Positions 10,741 to 59,089 are shown, counted from the stretch's first letter. The stretch is DNA of 64,000 nucleotides from Octopus sinensis (GCF_006345805.1 NC_042997.1:146134001-146198000); one strand, 5' to 3'. Program-made: numbers and translations. The notes: generated from the sequence alone by a model not told the origin.

Positions 10741-10869
10741 TTAGTATAGATAAATGAGTTCTTCCTGCGGAGATTCTGTAGTAGAATCACTCTCAGAAAT
10801 ACTCTCAGATTTACTCGCAGAACCACGATTTTTGGGTGGCGGACAATCTCCTTTGTTGAGCAAGACTTC
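10741..10869 (-). CDS. Gene 1 terminal coding exon: EVLLNKGDCPPPKNRGSASKSESISESDSTTESPQEELIYLY* (8th Cys + acidic Ser-rich tail; precursor 99 aa)
   Basis: Pyrimidine-rich acceptor TTTATTTCTACTTTCAG at 10870; phase 0 matches the upstream donor; open to TAA at 10741-10743; clear nucleotide homology to the exon at 33883-33987; AATAAA ~65 nt downstream. Confidence 0.85.
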   Translation of the reverse strand, partial: EVLLNKGDCPPPKNRGSASKSESISESDSTTESPQEELIYLY

Positions 10870-11641
10870 CTGAAAGTAGAAATAAATTGCGTAGTACTGA
10901 TATATTTTAAACTAAGTATTAATATGATATATTTTATTATTCAGAGAGAGAGAGGGAGAGAGAGCACTTTTTAAACAAGATATCTAAAGATCTTTGCAAA
11001 TCAAAACTGAGACGGTTTTTGATTTCATTTAGTACCTTATTCAATTTTTCTTAAGACAATTAAGGTTTGAATTCTATAATTTCATAAATTAATATTTTAC
11101 CGTAATGAAAGGCAGTCGGTGACAGAGTTATGCAATTAATAACTAACTCCTTCGTGTAATTATTTTCATGGTATAAGCATTCTGACATTATTTCTCTTTA
11201 CTATAGATAGAATATCTTTAACTAGTTTATCCAGAATCATTTTAGATATCACATATTATACACAGGATTTGAAAACTCCTTAGTGTTTTCACTGGCATAA
11301 GAAAGCGTCGTCTAGCTCTTGCTGGACTTTTAATGAGACACAGTGAAACTGATGTGAGAGTTATGTTATGCCCCTGCTCATAGGCGTGGTCGCCCGAACC
11401 TGATCCTCTAAGAAATCATTGAGGAAAATGTTGGACTACATGGCAGTGTCTTGATGAACGCGATACATGGAGGAACTTCATAGTATCACTAATTAGATTG
11501 GGATTAATTTTAAAATCAAGAGCAAGGTTTCTTTTAAATACTGCAATATATATGAATATTTCATCACGTTGCGTTGTCTCTTATACTTCATGAAATACAT
11601 TTCAGCTTTCATTACGAAACTGTCGTGTAACGATAAACCTG

Positions 11642-12058
11642 GGATCTTTTCGGTTTGAACGGCAGTTTTTAACATAATTTCTAGGTAACTAAAAAAATTT
11701 GAACTTCGTATACTGGTAGAATGTGTTTATAAAACATCTTTTTCTCTTGGCTTTATTGAGAAAATTCTATAGTTTGTAAGATATCTGTTTTTTGTCTTCA
11801 ATTTCTGCAATTTCAACCAATCAAATGCGTCTATTGAGGTGAAAACATTCTGTGCCGTATGAATATGTCCCTCGTTTAAGAAACAGATTGGGTTTATTTA
11901 CATTTCTGAAGTAAAAAGATACCCTTCCCCCAACCCCTAAACCTGACCCTAACCCTAAAACAGATTGAAATGCAATAGATCGATACTAGGGTCATAATTA
12001 TGGATGACAATTTCATATGACACCGCTAGATAAAACTGCCGTTCAAACCGAAAAGATC
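11642..12058. mobile_element. MITE with 27-bp TIRs and 9-bp target-site duplication
   Basis: GATCTTTTCGGTTTGAACGGCAGTTTT (11643-11669) and its exact reverse complement (12032-12058); ATAAACCTG on both sides (11633-11641, 12059-12067). Confidence 0.85.
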
Positions 12059-12420
12059 ATAAACCTGTATGTATATCATGTCATCTTATCACAGACGGAA
12101 AAAGCTGCTTGCGTTATATCTTCTTGTTCTTCATGTTCTATTTTCAAATCCCACTTGAATCAACGTTACCTTTAAACCTTTCGGGTCGATGAAATAAACA
12201 GTCAGTCAAGAGATGTGGGTACTTTTTGGCTACTTCATCCCCATTGAAAAATTGCCATTAAAAAATTAGATTATCTTCCCACTAAAAAATCGAGTTAAAG
12301 TTGCGACAAGAGATTGGATTAAAAGAGTTAGATGCTTTTGATTCAATACTTCAACACCTTGTTTATTTTTGGCCTCCTCAATAGCCATGGTATGATTTGT
12401 TATAAAAATATTATCAGATA

Positions 12421-12908
12421 GGCGCAGGAATGGCTGTGTGGTAAGTAGCTTGCTAACCAACCACATGGCTCCGGGTTCAGTCCCACTGCGTGGCATCTTG
12501 GGCAAGTGTCTTCTACTATAGCCCCGGGCCGACCAAAGCCTTGTGAGTGGATTTGGTAGACGGAAACTGAAAGAAGCCTGTCGTATATATGTGTATATAT
12601 ATATATATATATATATATATATATATATATATATATATATATGTGTGTGTGTGTGTGTGTGTGTGTTGTGTGTGTGTGTGTGTGTGTGTGTGTGTGTGTG
12701 CGTGTCTGTTTGTGTGTCTGTGTTTGTCCCCCTAGCATTGCTTGACAACCGATGCTGATGTGTTTATGTCCCCGTTACTTAGCGGTTCGGCAAAAGAGAC
12801 CGATAGAATAAGTACTGGGCTTACAAAGAATAAGTCCCGGGGTCGATTTCCTCGACAAAAGGCGGTGCTCCAGCATGGCCGCAGTCAAATGACTGAAACA
12901 AGTAAAAA
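12421..12908 (+). mobile_element. Full-length family A SINE in intron 2 of gene 1 (antisense)
   Basis: GGCGCAGGAATGGCTGTGTGGTAAG head, GGTTCAGTCCC B-box, internal microsatellite, conserved tail. Confidence 0.9.
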
Positions 12909-13279
12909 GACAAAAAAAAAAGATACAATAAGATGTTTATTTTTTTTTTTCAGTTTTCATGTTTATTAACTTTTCTTTTATTTTCTTTTTGTTTTATTGA
13001 GGGTTAAACAATTTTTTTAGCTGAGGGAGATAACCCAAAGTACCGATATTCCTCGTAAAACGGGAGATATAACCCAATTTTTTAATGGGGTGCGATAACC
13101 AAAAAGTATCGGCAACTATTACTGTTATAGTATTTTTTCTTCTTTTTTTTGAGAAAAAGGTAATTTGAGTGAGAATTATATATATATATATATAATATAT
13201 ATATATATATATATATATATATTATATATATATATATATTATATATATATAAGTTACAAAACTAAGCGGCATGACTTAC

Positions 13280-13450
13280 CATCCTAGTTCTACAATAACA
13301 AGCGCATTTCTTGCTACAAGAGACACTCGTAGAAAGTTTACACAGTGCTACCATGCAGTTAGTGGAACAGCCACCAGAAAAGAATATTGCTTCTACTCCA
13401 ACACACAGCGTCAATGATATCAACACCAATTTTAGAGTTAAAGAGACCAT
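13280..13450 (-). CDS. Cys-rich secreted peptide gene 1, coding exon A (signal peptide + 7 Cys): MVSLTLKLVLISLTLCVGVEA/IFFSGGCSTNCMVALCKLSTSVSCSKKCACYCRTRM
   Basis: Acceptor (T)n-GCAG 2 nt before the ATG at 13450; phase-0 donor ATG|GTAAGT at 13279; hydrophobic N-terminus ending V-E-A; Cys spacing identical to paralogs at 36.6 kb and 59.0 kb. Confidence 0.9.
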
Positions 13451-14012
13451 TTCTGCAAAAAAAAAAAACAAAAGACAAAACAGAACACACTACAATTAAT
13501 ACAACTATACGATAATATTCCTGTATACACAAATATAAGTATAAACATTCTGTTATATATTAATTATAAATAAACAAGGTAGAATGTTTTTCACTGCTTA
13601 CTGTAGCTAGTTTAATGTTTTTGACATGCAGGTGAGCCCTTCCCACCCCCCACCACTTTCTCGCTTCTGTAATAGATGATGGAAGAGGCAGCGAAAGTGC
13701 TGTTTCCTAATTGGCTGAAAATTCTGAAAATTATCAAACTTTGAATATCTGTAACAATTTCGCAAAGTTTTTTTCTGGAATAAATGATTAACAAATTCGG
13801 ATTCAACGTCAAAAATTGCTGCTACATGATACATTAAAGAATGATTTTTAAAGATTTAGACATGCAGTGACGATAACCACAAATATCCAACGCATATAAT
13901 ACATACATACATACATACATACATACAGATAGACAGACAGGCACGCGCGCTCGCACACCCGCACACACACACACACACACACAAACACACACACAGACAC
14001 ACACACACCCAT

Positions 14013-57621: not shown

Positions 57622-57840
57622 AGGCGCGTGGCTTCGTGGTTAGGGTGTTGAGTGCATGATCATAAGATTGCGGTTTCGATTCCTCGACTGATCGATGCAT
57701 TGTGTTCTTGAGCAAAAACCACCCAGTTAGGCAAAAATGAGTAACCTTGCGACGAACCGGCATCCCATCCAGGTGGAGAATATATACGTCACGTAAACCG
57801 GAAACCTGGCCCTTTGAGAGACCACATGTCTTGAGAAGGA
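57622..57840 (+). mobile_element. Family C SINE (degenerate)
   Basis: GGCGCGTGGCTTCGTGGTTAGGGTGTT..CATGATCATAAGATTGCGGTTTCGATTCC. Confidence 0.75.
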
Positions 57841-58522
57841 TATTTATCCTAACAGGTCCGATTTCTGCATCGAAACCGAAGACAGTCTTTTGTTTAGTGA
57901 ATTCAATTCGTGACATATTTGATACATAAAGGCATTCCCCTTATAAATTCTCACCATGGCTAACACATGCGACATCAATATGTTCGTTTTTGCTAATGCT
58001 TTAGGTTCAGATATTAACTGTTAGACATTAACTATTAGAAATTTTGGTGTTGTAAATGTAATCACTTGCTACTTATTTTATCATAGTCAATAATGATACG
58101 TACCAGACCTTCATTTCTGTTGGAAAAATAATAAACAGCATTAATGAATACTTTCTTATATCGTCCTCTGGCACTCAGTAGTTCGTACTCTCTATGGATG
58201 TAGTGTTATTGTGTACCAGACTTATTGTATAGTGTGCAGATCTTTAACTGATTTCTTCTGCTGCACTCAACAGAAATTAAATATATGGCACCTCAATGAA
58301 ATACTAGAAAGCCGTTTGGCGGGACTGCAAATTTGTCGATGGCAAAGATAGCGTTATCGCAATTGAGATGAATTTTAAAATATTTTTTACTCTTAAGATA
58401 TTAATTTTTCACTCGCTTTCGGACATCTTTCGAAAACATGCATACCAAAATATATATATAGAACGCGCAAGCCTCACACTGAAATTCTAAACAATCTGAT
58501 ATCCTAGTTAGTCAGCGTCCTT

Positions 58523-58741
58523 TTAAGCCAAATTTTTGTATATATCTAGTTCAACAAGCAGCTTAGTTAACAATACTAAGGTTGGCATTTGTATCATGCA
58601 ACAGCTGCTCATCCATAAGATTGGCAGATGAACCTGATACTCTTCGCAAGTTTCGTCACAGACATTGCTCTCAGAACCTAAAGAACCAGAACAGATACTG
58701 CTAGACATCTGACACGATCCTTTGTAAGTTTTGCCTTTCTT
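58523..58741 (-). CDS. Candidate terminal exon of gene 3: (K)KGKTYKGSCQMSSSICSGSLGSESNVCDETCEEYQVHLPILWMSSCC...NLA*
   Basis: YKGSC aligns with NKGDC of gene 1 (AAAGGATCGTGT vs AAAGGAGATTGT); TAG|AAG|AAA tandem acceptor at 58744-58739 gives 13 or 12 residues between Cys7 and Cys8 (12 in genes 1 and 2); Ser/Glu-rich tail. Weak polypyrimidine tract and no clear AATAAA. Confidence 0.45.
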   Translation of the reverse strand, partial: KKGKTYKGSCQMSSSICSGSLGSESNVCDETCEEYQVHLPILWMSSCCMIQMPTLVLLTKLLVELDIYKNLA

Positions 58742-58749
58742 CTAATCTG

Positions 58750-58892
58750 GTTTGGGTACATTTATATCGACCCTGAAGGGACGAAAAGCAATTTTGAGAT
58801 AACAGCAGAATTTGAACTTAAACCTCAGAGTCGTAATAAATATTGCAGGACATTTTATCCGAAATTCTAGTTTCTCTGCCAATTCGCCATTC
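58750..58892 (-). mobile_element. Degenerate family B SINE-like sequence forming most of the predicted gene 3 intron 2
   Basis: Minus strand GGCGAATTGGCAGA..AGTTCAAATTCTGCTG..TTGCTTTTCGTCCCTTCAGGGTCGATA. Confidence 0.55.
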
Positions 58893-58921
58893 AAAATAAC
58901 ATACGAAATTTCTTTACTTAC

Positions 58922-59089
58922 CTGAGCCGTCAAACAGTCACATTTGCATTTTCTTTTACAAGGAACACTAAATTGGCTACGACAACTGACCATGATACAC
59001 CTTTGTGAGCATGTGTGGCTGTAAAATGCTTCAGTTCCAACGAAGAGAACTAAAGATATTAGCATCATTTTCAAGAGAAGATTGTTCAT
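58922..59089 (-). CDS. Cys-rich secreted peptide gene 3, coding exon A: MNNLLLKMMLISLVLFVGTEA/FYSHTCSQRCIMVSCRSQFSVPCKRKCKCDCLTAQ
   Basis: Acceptor TATCTTTTATTACAG|GAT before the ATG at 59089; donor CAG|GTAAGT at 58921 at the same position (4 codons after Cys7) and phase as genes 1 and 2; identical 7-Cys spacing; MLISLVL motif shared with gene 2. Confidence 0.85.

Follow-up and report, generated by a model that had tools for sequence, protein, structure and literature searches.

What are the peptides encoded by three small genes that stand in tandem on chromosome 1 of Octopus sinensis, and what might they do? The genes, here called g1, g2 and g3, were identified by a six-frame regular-expression search and tblastn as paralogues, all on the minus strand, in a 64,000-nucleotide stretch (C1:146134001-146198000; the window) where an original prediction had placed a cluster for an unrecognised family of secreted, cationic, eight-Cys peptides. 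We favour, with moderate confidence, the reading that they belong to a rapidly diverging, octopod-restricted family of tandem paralogues whose products are predicted to be secreted four-disulfide peptides, probably of the salivary (venom) gland. The family is the NP1/LOC115217762 family, which is already in databases and has no described function, fold or disulfide map. New here are two unannotated paralogues (g1 and g3), the structure of the four-gene cluster, and the finding that a public label assigning members to the trypsin-inhibitor-like (TIL) domain proteins is not reproducible. Many short secreted proteins in octopus saliva have no known function and, to our knowledge, very few peptide toxins or host-defence peptides of cephalopods have been studied in detail.

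Structure of the cluster

Gene structures and paralogy were read directly from the genome. The ATG-to-ATG distances are 23,260 bp between g1 and g2 and 22,379 bp between g2 and g3, bearing out a predicted spacing of about 23 kb. When g1 exon 2 was used as the tblastn query within the window, g2 was found with an E value of 5.6e-19 and g3 with 2e-13, the next match having E 0.05. Exon 2 of each gene encodes a 21-residue leader ending in VEA or TEA, then the framework C-x3-C-x4-C-x7-C-x3-C-x-C-x-C, and four codons past Cys7 it reaches a GTAAGT donor in phase 0; the leader, the invariant seven-Cys framework and the intron were all present in the three genes as the original prediction had described them. 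Searches of the whole 2.72-Gb genome with g1 and g4 found exactly four family members, every one on the C1 minus strand. The fourth, g4, is RefSeq LOC115215494 (loci L004/L007) and lies about 29.5 kb beyond g3. In g1-g4, Cys8 comes from a short last exon with a variable tail, and intron phase and position are identical across the four genes and O. bimaculoides. The coding features are as follows, in window coordinates except for g4, which is outside the window and was found by genome search.

g1 exon 2: 13280..13452, coding sequence (CDS) 13450..13280, minus strand; acceptor ...TTGCAG/AA, ATG at 13450, leader, Cys1-7, RTRM, GTAAGT donor in phase 0; product (13450..13280), leader MVSLTLKLVLISLTLCVGVEA, remainder IFFSGGCSTNCMVALCKLSTSVSCSKKCACYCRTRM
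g1 last coding exon: 10741..10869, minus strand; TTTCAG acceptor; EVLLNKGDC(Cys8)PPPKNRG...ELIYLY, stop TAA
g2 5' exon, 3' part: 49542..49577, minus strand; donor AAG/GTTAGG, joining TAG/CAGAAAATG; 100% tblastn match to the N-terminus of CAI9716092.1 (O. vulgaris)
g2 exon 2: 36540..36716, CDS 36710..36540, minus strand; acceptor TCTAG/CAGAAAATG, ATG at 36710, leader, Cys1-7, RTAW, GTAAGT donor; product (36710..36540), leader MVSLTLKCMLISLVLCVGVEA, remainder VFLPNNCLSQCLAVQCRNSMRVTCTKLCKCKCRTAW
g2 last coding exon: 33883..33987, minus strand; TTTCAG acceptor; EVRLNKENC(Cys8)PAPEHGGFERDPTFGSQHQLTNYPH and stop
g3 exon 2: 58922..59092, CDS 59089..58922, minus strand; acceptor TTATTACAG/GAT, ATG at 59089, leader, Cys1-7, LTAQ, GTAAGT donor; product (59089..58922), leader MNNLLLKMMLISLVLFVGTEA, remainder FYSHTCSQRCIMVSCRSQFSVPCKRKCKCDCLTAQ
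g3 last coding exon (new): 57278..57325, minus strand; strong acceptor TTTTTTTTCTTCTTTCAG; NVKLDEEQKKYC(Cys8)SKS, stop TGA
g4 exon 2: C1:146222466-146222630, minus strand
g4 last exon: C1:146214585-146214653, minus strand; encodes NIRFNEKLYCSDVPKQTTNSST

The Cys regular expression also matched at 12644-12721, 15947-16028 and 2828-2905, where there are no genes. These matches are (TG)n/(CA)n microsatellite open reading frames (CVCVCV) and, at 2828-2905, a poly-Cys (CCCC) low-complexity stretch; thus the cysteine pattern alone is not specific.

The last exons of g1 and g2 are as predicted, with TTTCAG acceptors and with Cys8 placed 12 residues past Cys7, giving precursors of 99 and 91 residues. 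The g1 precursor ends in an acidic tail of 33 residues, and AATAAA lies about 65 nt 3' of the g1 stop and 61 nt 3' of the g2 stop. The two exons are paralogous in DNA (10821-11062 versus 33939-34178, 68.7%). Spliced g2 is letter-for-letter RefSeq XP_029643334.1, uncharacterized protein LOC115217762 [Octopus sinensis], so g2 was already annotated; its junction between exon 2 and the last exon is conserved, with GTAAGT and TTTCAG, in the O. bimaculoides genomic locus L028. The g1 protein matches O. bimaculoides A0A0L8GPL3 with E 3.9e-45, at 83% identity over the full 99 residues and 89% over exon 2, and that 99-residue model has the same junction as g1.

The original prediction gave no last exon for g3, and we located it at 57325..57278. 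Every phase-0 acceptor from 58921 to 49600 was scanned, with the g1, g2 and g4 introns as positive controls, in two of which, g2 and g4, the true exon took the first rank, while in g1 it shared the top score. The exon at 57325..57278 ranked first among 43 phase-0 acceptor candidates. It encodes NVKLDEEQKKYCSKS followed by the stop, which AATAAA nearly adjoins, and it is homologous in both protein and DNA to the last exons of g4 and O. bimaculoides LOC106875685 (NI[RK]FNEKLYCSDV). Accordingly, g3 encodes a 71-residue precursor with eight Cys. Exon 2 of g3 is also intact, with seven of seven Cys, in contigs of another octopod (L011-L015), at 82% nucleotide identity over an aligned genomic stretch of 692 nt; the Logan contigs carrying this g3 orthologue are genomic, not cDNA. 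Other candidates for the g3 last exon were rejected. Those at 55941 and 54363 have an unsuitable phase or acceptor, and the one at 58613-58745 on the minus strand (KKGKTYKGSC...) is without a polypyrimidine tract and has a C-terminus that is not conserved. In the latter segment the frame directly follows an AG that lies 180 nt downstream from the g3 donor; it is open in two octopod species (KKGKTYKGSC and KKGRTHDVSC, L011 about 785-890) and has a Cys where Cys8 would be expected.

A splice acceptor stands directly before the ATG in g1, g2 and g3, so an additional 5' exon is expected, and a distant 5' exon is present in g2 and g4, the two genes where it is visible. In g2, an intron of 12.8 kb separates the 5' exon from exon 2, and the 5' exon holds an in-frame upstream ATG (MIEKFRSIYTLK) that is used by the 105-residue O. 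vulgaris model. The g4 5' exon gives the 13-residue N-terminal extension of RefSeq XP_029640520.1 (a 90-residue model); its distance upstream exceeds 10 kb in O. sinensis (nothing matched within the 10 kb examined) and is 7.2 kb in O. bimaculoides, where the segment with the upstream in-frame ATG is kept in 10 of 12 residues (L029 2756-2791). Gene models that use the upstream ATGs of g2 and g4 place 13-14 residues before the putative signal peptide. A blastn search for paralogues of the g2 5' exon came up empty and so gave no candidate 5' exon for g1 or g3.

The four genes fall into two subfamilies. Subfamily A, g1 and g2, has the leader MVSLTLK and the last exon EV.LNK..CP; subfamily B, g3 and g4, has the leader MNNL and the last exon N[IV][KR][FL][ND]E..YCS. 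Duplication units 1 and 2 have colinear non-coding blocks that are 66-80% identical (15726-16371 matching 40137-40800, and 20436-21733 matching 43012-44541), which points to an old segmental tandem duplication. These blocks may be common regulatory sequence or only duplication leftovers.

Family records, lineage restriction and divergence

The family was recovered from databases by word-indexed and exhaustive searches. Besides the O. sinensis RefSeq loci LOC115217762 (g2) and LOC115215494 (g4), the records are as follows.

A0A0L8GPL3, O. bimaculoides: 99 residues; model of the g1 orthologue, 83% identity to g1
LOC106875686, O. bimaculoides: 91 residues; g2 orthologue; family profile E 7.4e-38
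LOC106875685, O. bimaculoides: 77 residues; g4 orthologue; family profile E 2.3e-19
CAI9716092.1, O. vulgaris: model of 105 residues
NP1 (B6Z1Y7/ACJ22656.1), Hapalochlaena maculosa: 92 residues; family profile E 1.9e-29

The family is therefore not unrecognised, as had been claimed: NP1, three O. bimaculoides records, two O. sinensis RefSeq loci and an O. vulgaris model were already deposited. The claim that such genes are easily missed by annotation holds for g1 and g3, which are unannotated, and fails for g2 and g4, which are annotated. For g1 and g3 no exact or near-identical protein record was found in the searched databases, and exact-protein look-ups of g1, g2, P0001 and NP1 among assemblies gave no match. 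The junctions agree as well: NP1 reads ...CRTPW/EVRQNKYNC..., which is the exon 2/exon 3 junction sequence of g2, and at the O. bimaculoides loci L028 and L029 the junctions, GTAAGT donors and acceptors (TTTCAG in L028, TTTTCAG in L029) are all conserved. Independent gene models in three species are all 77-105 residues long (91, 90, 99, 77 and 105), which shows that the exons do not belong to a larger protein, a possibility that the original prediction had named as one that would refute it. NP1, from the blue-ringed octopus, is taken to be cDNA-derived; it reportedly stems from a 2009 study of the H. maculosa posterior (venom) gland, an origin that would fit the predicted role as toxin or host-defence peptide. 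No mention of the family was found in the literature by accession, LOC identifier, sequence or the name NP1, the 2009 venom-gland paper lying outside the scope of that search.

An exhaustive profile search (HMMER) of 1.84 billion protein representatives returned only four octopod clusters at E<=1e-3, a cut-off that may still hide distant relatives, given a Cys-rich domain of about 45 residues. The predicted lineage restriction was thus upheld, only octopod proteins passing the cut-off, and its extent was narrowed: the family had been called cephalopod-specific, and the evidence reaches Octopodidae only.

From the signal cleavage site to Cys8, the predicted cores are 44-46 residues long, with a net charge of +4 to +7 and an isoelectric point of 8.7-9.3. 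A predicted excess of about 8 Lys/Arg over 2 acidic residues is found in g2 (8 versus 2), the g1 core having fewer basic residues (6 versus 2); the g4 core has more acidic residues than the other cores (E3, net +4). Past Cys8 come tails of 3-33 residues, acidic in subfamily A with a charge of -2 to -4, whereas the g4 tail is neutral. Leader and core have diverged to very different extents. Between g1 and g2, amino acid identity is 86% in the leader versus 36% in the core, synonymous divergence (dS) 0.31 versus 1.47 and nonsynonymous divergence (dN) 0.11 versus 0.60; between g3 and g4, identity is 81% versus 38%. The estimates for both pairs come from only 21 and about 35 codons. For orthologue pairs of O. 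sinensis and O. bimaculoides, omega (dN/dS) is about 0.5, and all Cys are retained. The evolution of the family is fast and is not demonstrably adaptive. A conserved leader joined to a core that has diverged around fixed Cys is the usual signature of secreted effector peptides, such as toxins and host-defence peptides.

Proposed role and its rivals

From the precursor sequences we infer secretion, disulfide formation, tissue of expression and activity along the following lines. The pre-peptide would enter the endoplasmic reticulum and be cut by signal peptidase after V/T-E-A; the cationic core, some 45 residues long with a net charge of +4 to +7, would then be held by four disulfides, and secretion would follow. 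The array would have grown by segmental tandem duplication, with the leader kept and the mature core changing everywhere but in its Cys scaffold. Made in the posterior salivary (venom) gland and released in saliva, the product would act extracellularly on prey or microbes. Cephalopod salivary-gland libraries contain lineage-specific peptides (PMC4280546), and 27 salivary secreted superfamilies of unknown function are reported, many without homologues outside cephalopods (bioRxiv 10.64898/2026.02.02.703354); on the grounds of this literature and of NP1, the one named member, we regard the salivary gland as the likeliest source.

Several points weigh against this assignment. That NP1 came from the venom gland is only presumed. 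Apart from the O. bimaculoides model of the g1 orthologue, the species searched yielded neither transcripts nor protein records for g1 and g3. No recognisable processing site, dibasic sites included, was found between core and tail. An omega below 1 gives no sign of positive selection. Finally, no fold is assigned (predicted local distance difference test scores, pLDDT, of 41 and 49), so that no mechanism of action can be derived.

The fold itself was sought in several ways. No Pfam family was above threshold for family members. The original prediction had seen a resemblance to the ShKT-like end of CRISPs, which did not hold up: neither the ShK nor the Crisp Pfam model was listed at E<=10 for any member. 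Sequence and profile searches of the PDB likewise gave no match at E<=10. AlphaFold2 gave a pLDDT of 40.7 for mature g2 (9-row alignment) and 48.8 for a 52-residue core (7 rows), and these models are unusable, being too poor for a fold search. A bolder reading would make the family an octopod-born disulfide scaffold with a novel fold, unrelated to TIL domains, myticins or solved structures, its four paralogues being salivary toxins with distinct prey targets. We consider this doubtful; if true, it would mean a new pharmacological peptide class from octopus venom.

The peptides might instead be host-defence (antimicrobial) peptides, analogous or distantly related to the myticins of bivalves, with a cationic core and an anionic extension removed on activation. 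The Myticin-prepro model (PF10690) gave repeated sub-threshold matches, of 20.4 bits with NP1, 20.3 with O. bimaculoides LOC106875685 and 16.6 with the g3 exon, and the precursor is tripartite, with a signal, a cationic eight-Cys core and an acidic tail. Myticin genes have four exons, the first non-coding, with signal, mature peptide and C-terminal region in separate exons (PMC7356231), and the octopod genes, which also form a tandem multigene array, resemble them in a first exon that is probably non-coding, although translation begins within it in two gene models. The octopod family has CxxxC and CxC motifs, which by themselves are not diagnostic of a cysteine-stabilised alpha-beta fold such as that expected of a myticin. 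However, the PF10690 scores are all under the 28.5-bit cut-off, the leader supplies about half of the score (mature g4 alone gives 11.3 bits), and random six-frame open reading frames of the O. sinensis genome, most with internal stops, reach 18-24 bits. Further, the octopod signal and Cys1-7 (7 of 8) are in one exon, with an intron inside the Cys array, whereas myticins use three separate exons; the Cys spacing is unlike that of myticins. We regard a host-defence role of this kind as unlikely.

Another reading, that the peptides are secreted and expressed outside the salivary glands, with a role neither in venom nor in immunity (signalling, pheromone, egg-coat or mucus), is favoured by the lack of any sequence feature tying the family to a tissue, by an omega of about 0.5, which fits many secreted proteins, and by the lack of any mention of the family by accession or sequence in the literature. 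On the other hand, the only named member has a name in the style of venom studies, NP1, and a conserved leader with a hypervariable core is met more typically in effector peptides than in ligands whose receptor is conserved. We regard a non-venom, non-immune role as distinctly unlikely.

The databases themselves suggest a further possibility, since three O. bimaculoides members bear the UniRef label 'TIL domain-containing protein': the peptides could be degenerate TIL domains acting as canonical serine-protease inhibitors. The likeness lies in the Cys array. Cys1-8 of the family (C-x3-C-x4-C-x7-C-x3-C-x-C-x-C-x12-C) resemble Cys2-9 of octopus TIL domains (C-x3-C-x3-C-x8-10-C-x3-C-x3-C-x-C-x10-12-C), and hhalign places Cys1, 2, 4, 5 and 8 of the family in the TIL register. 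Ten octopus TIL domains from the O. sinensis genome served as the reference. Genuine octopus TIL domains score 31-48 bits on PF01826 (cut-off 24.5 bits), but the model gave no match at E<=10 in any of the ten family sequences tested (g1, g2, the g3 exon, P0001-P0004 and three mature cores). Aligned by hhalign with the ten TIL domains, the family core had a probability of 2.2%, E 0.021 and a score of 13.7, and no TIL inhibitor came up at E<=10 in the PDB profile search. TIL domains have ten Cys (five disulfides) and a C-x5-C terminus, whereas the family has eight and no tenth; the family has C-x-C-x-C where TIL has C-x3-C-x-C, and TIL's conserved GC-x-C and G are absent. Octopus TIL matches that cover the whole model are single open frames, whereas the family's Cys array is split by an intron. 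With no PF01826 match, an hhalign probability of 2.2% and eight rather than ten Cys, the family is not filed as TIL, an inhibitory role of this kind is very unlikely, and the UniProt 'TIL domain' label, which could not be reproduced, appears misleading.

In sum, the salivary reading is the one we prefer. The locus gives a compact, full view of one family, with four genes, two subfamilies, exact exon structure and clear lineage restriction, and this complete picture means that the family can readily be put to the test with synthesised peptides in assays. Current views are not overturned, as lineage-specific, tandemly duplicated Cys-rich secreted peptides are expected in venomous molluscs.

Surrounding sequence and comparison with known systems

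Traces of mobile elements lie around and between the genes, as follows.

54576-55397, plus strand: 273-residue open frame, mariner/Mos1-type transposase (Pfam Transposase_1 E 1e-18, HTH_48 E 5e-9), between the g2 5' exon and the g3 last exon
8280-8690, minus strand: 136-residue open frame with a PIF1-like helicase match (E 5e-9), probably a Helitron-type remnant, downstream of g1
976-1256, 19504-19893, 33460-33626, 34535-34796, 36049-36468, 47668-48046 and 63316-63483, both orientations: copies of a SINE-like (short interspersed nuclear element-like) repeat, 75-90% identity

The SINE-like interspersed repeat is about 150-270 bp long, has many copies, and also occurs in the g2 intron.

Three known systems invite comparison with the octopod family. 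For TIL domains (PF01826, Ascaris-type inhibitors), the Cys spacing of the family partly coincides with that of TIL Cys2-Cys9, and the two differ in exon structure. Myticins (Mytilus) share with the family their mollusc origin, a signal of about 20 residues ending in G-x-E-A, a cationic eight-Cys core of about 40-45 residues, a C-terminal extension and membership of a multigene family, together with weak similarity to a profile hidden Markov model; myticins are peptides of bivalve haemocytes, and their intron positions differ from those of the octopod genes. Conotoxin-type gene superfamilies are comparable as a mode of evolution and not as homologues. Although the octopod family is unrelated to them in sequence, lacks a long propeptide and shows no sign of positive selection (orthologue omega about 0.5), it is like them in a signal conserved even at synonymous sites, in a hypervariable mature region built around fixed cysteines, and in tandem, multigene expansion.

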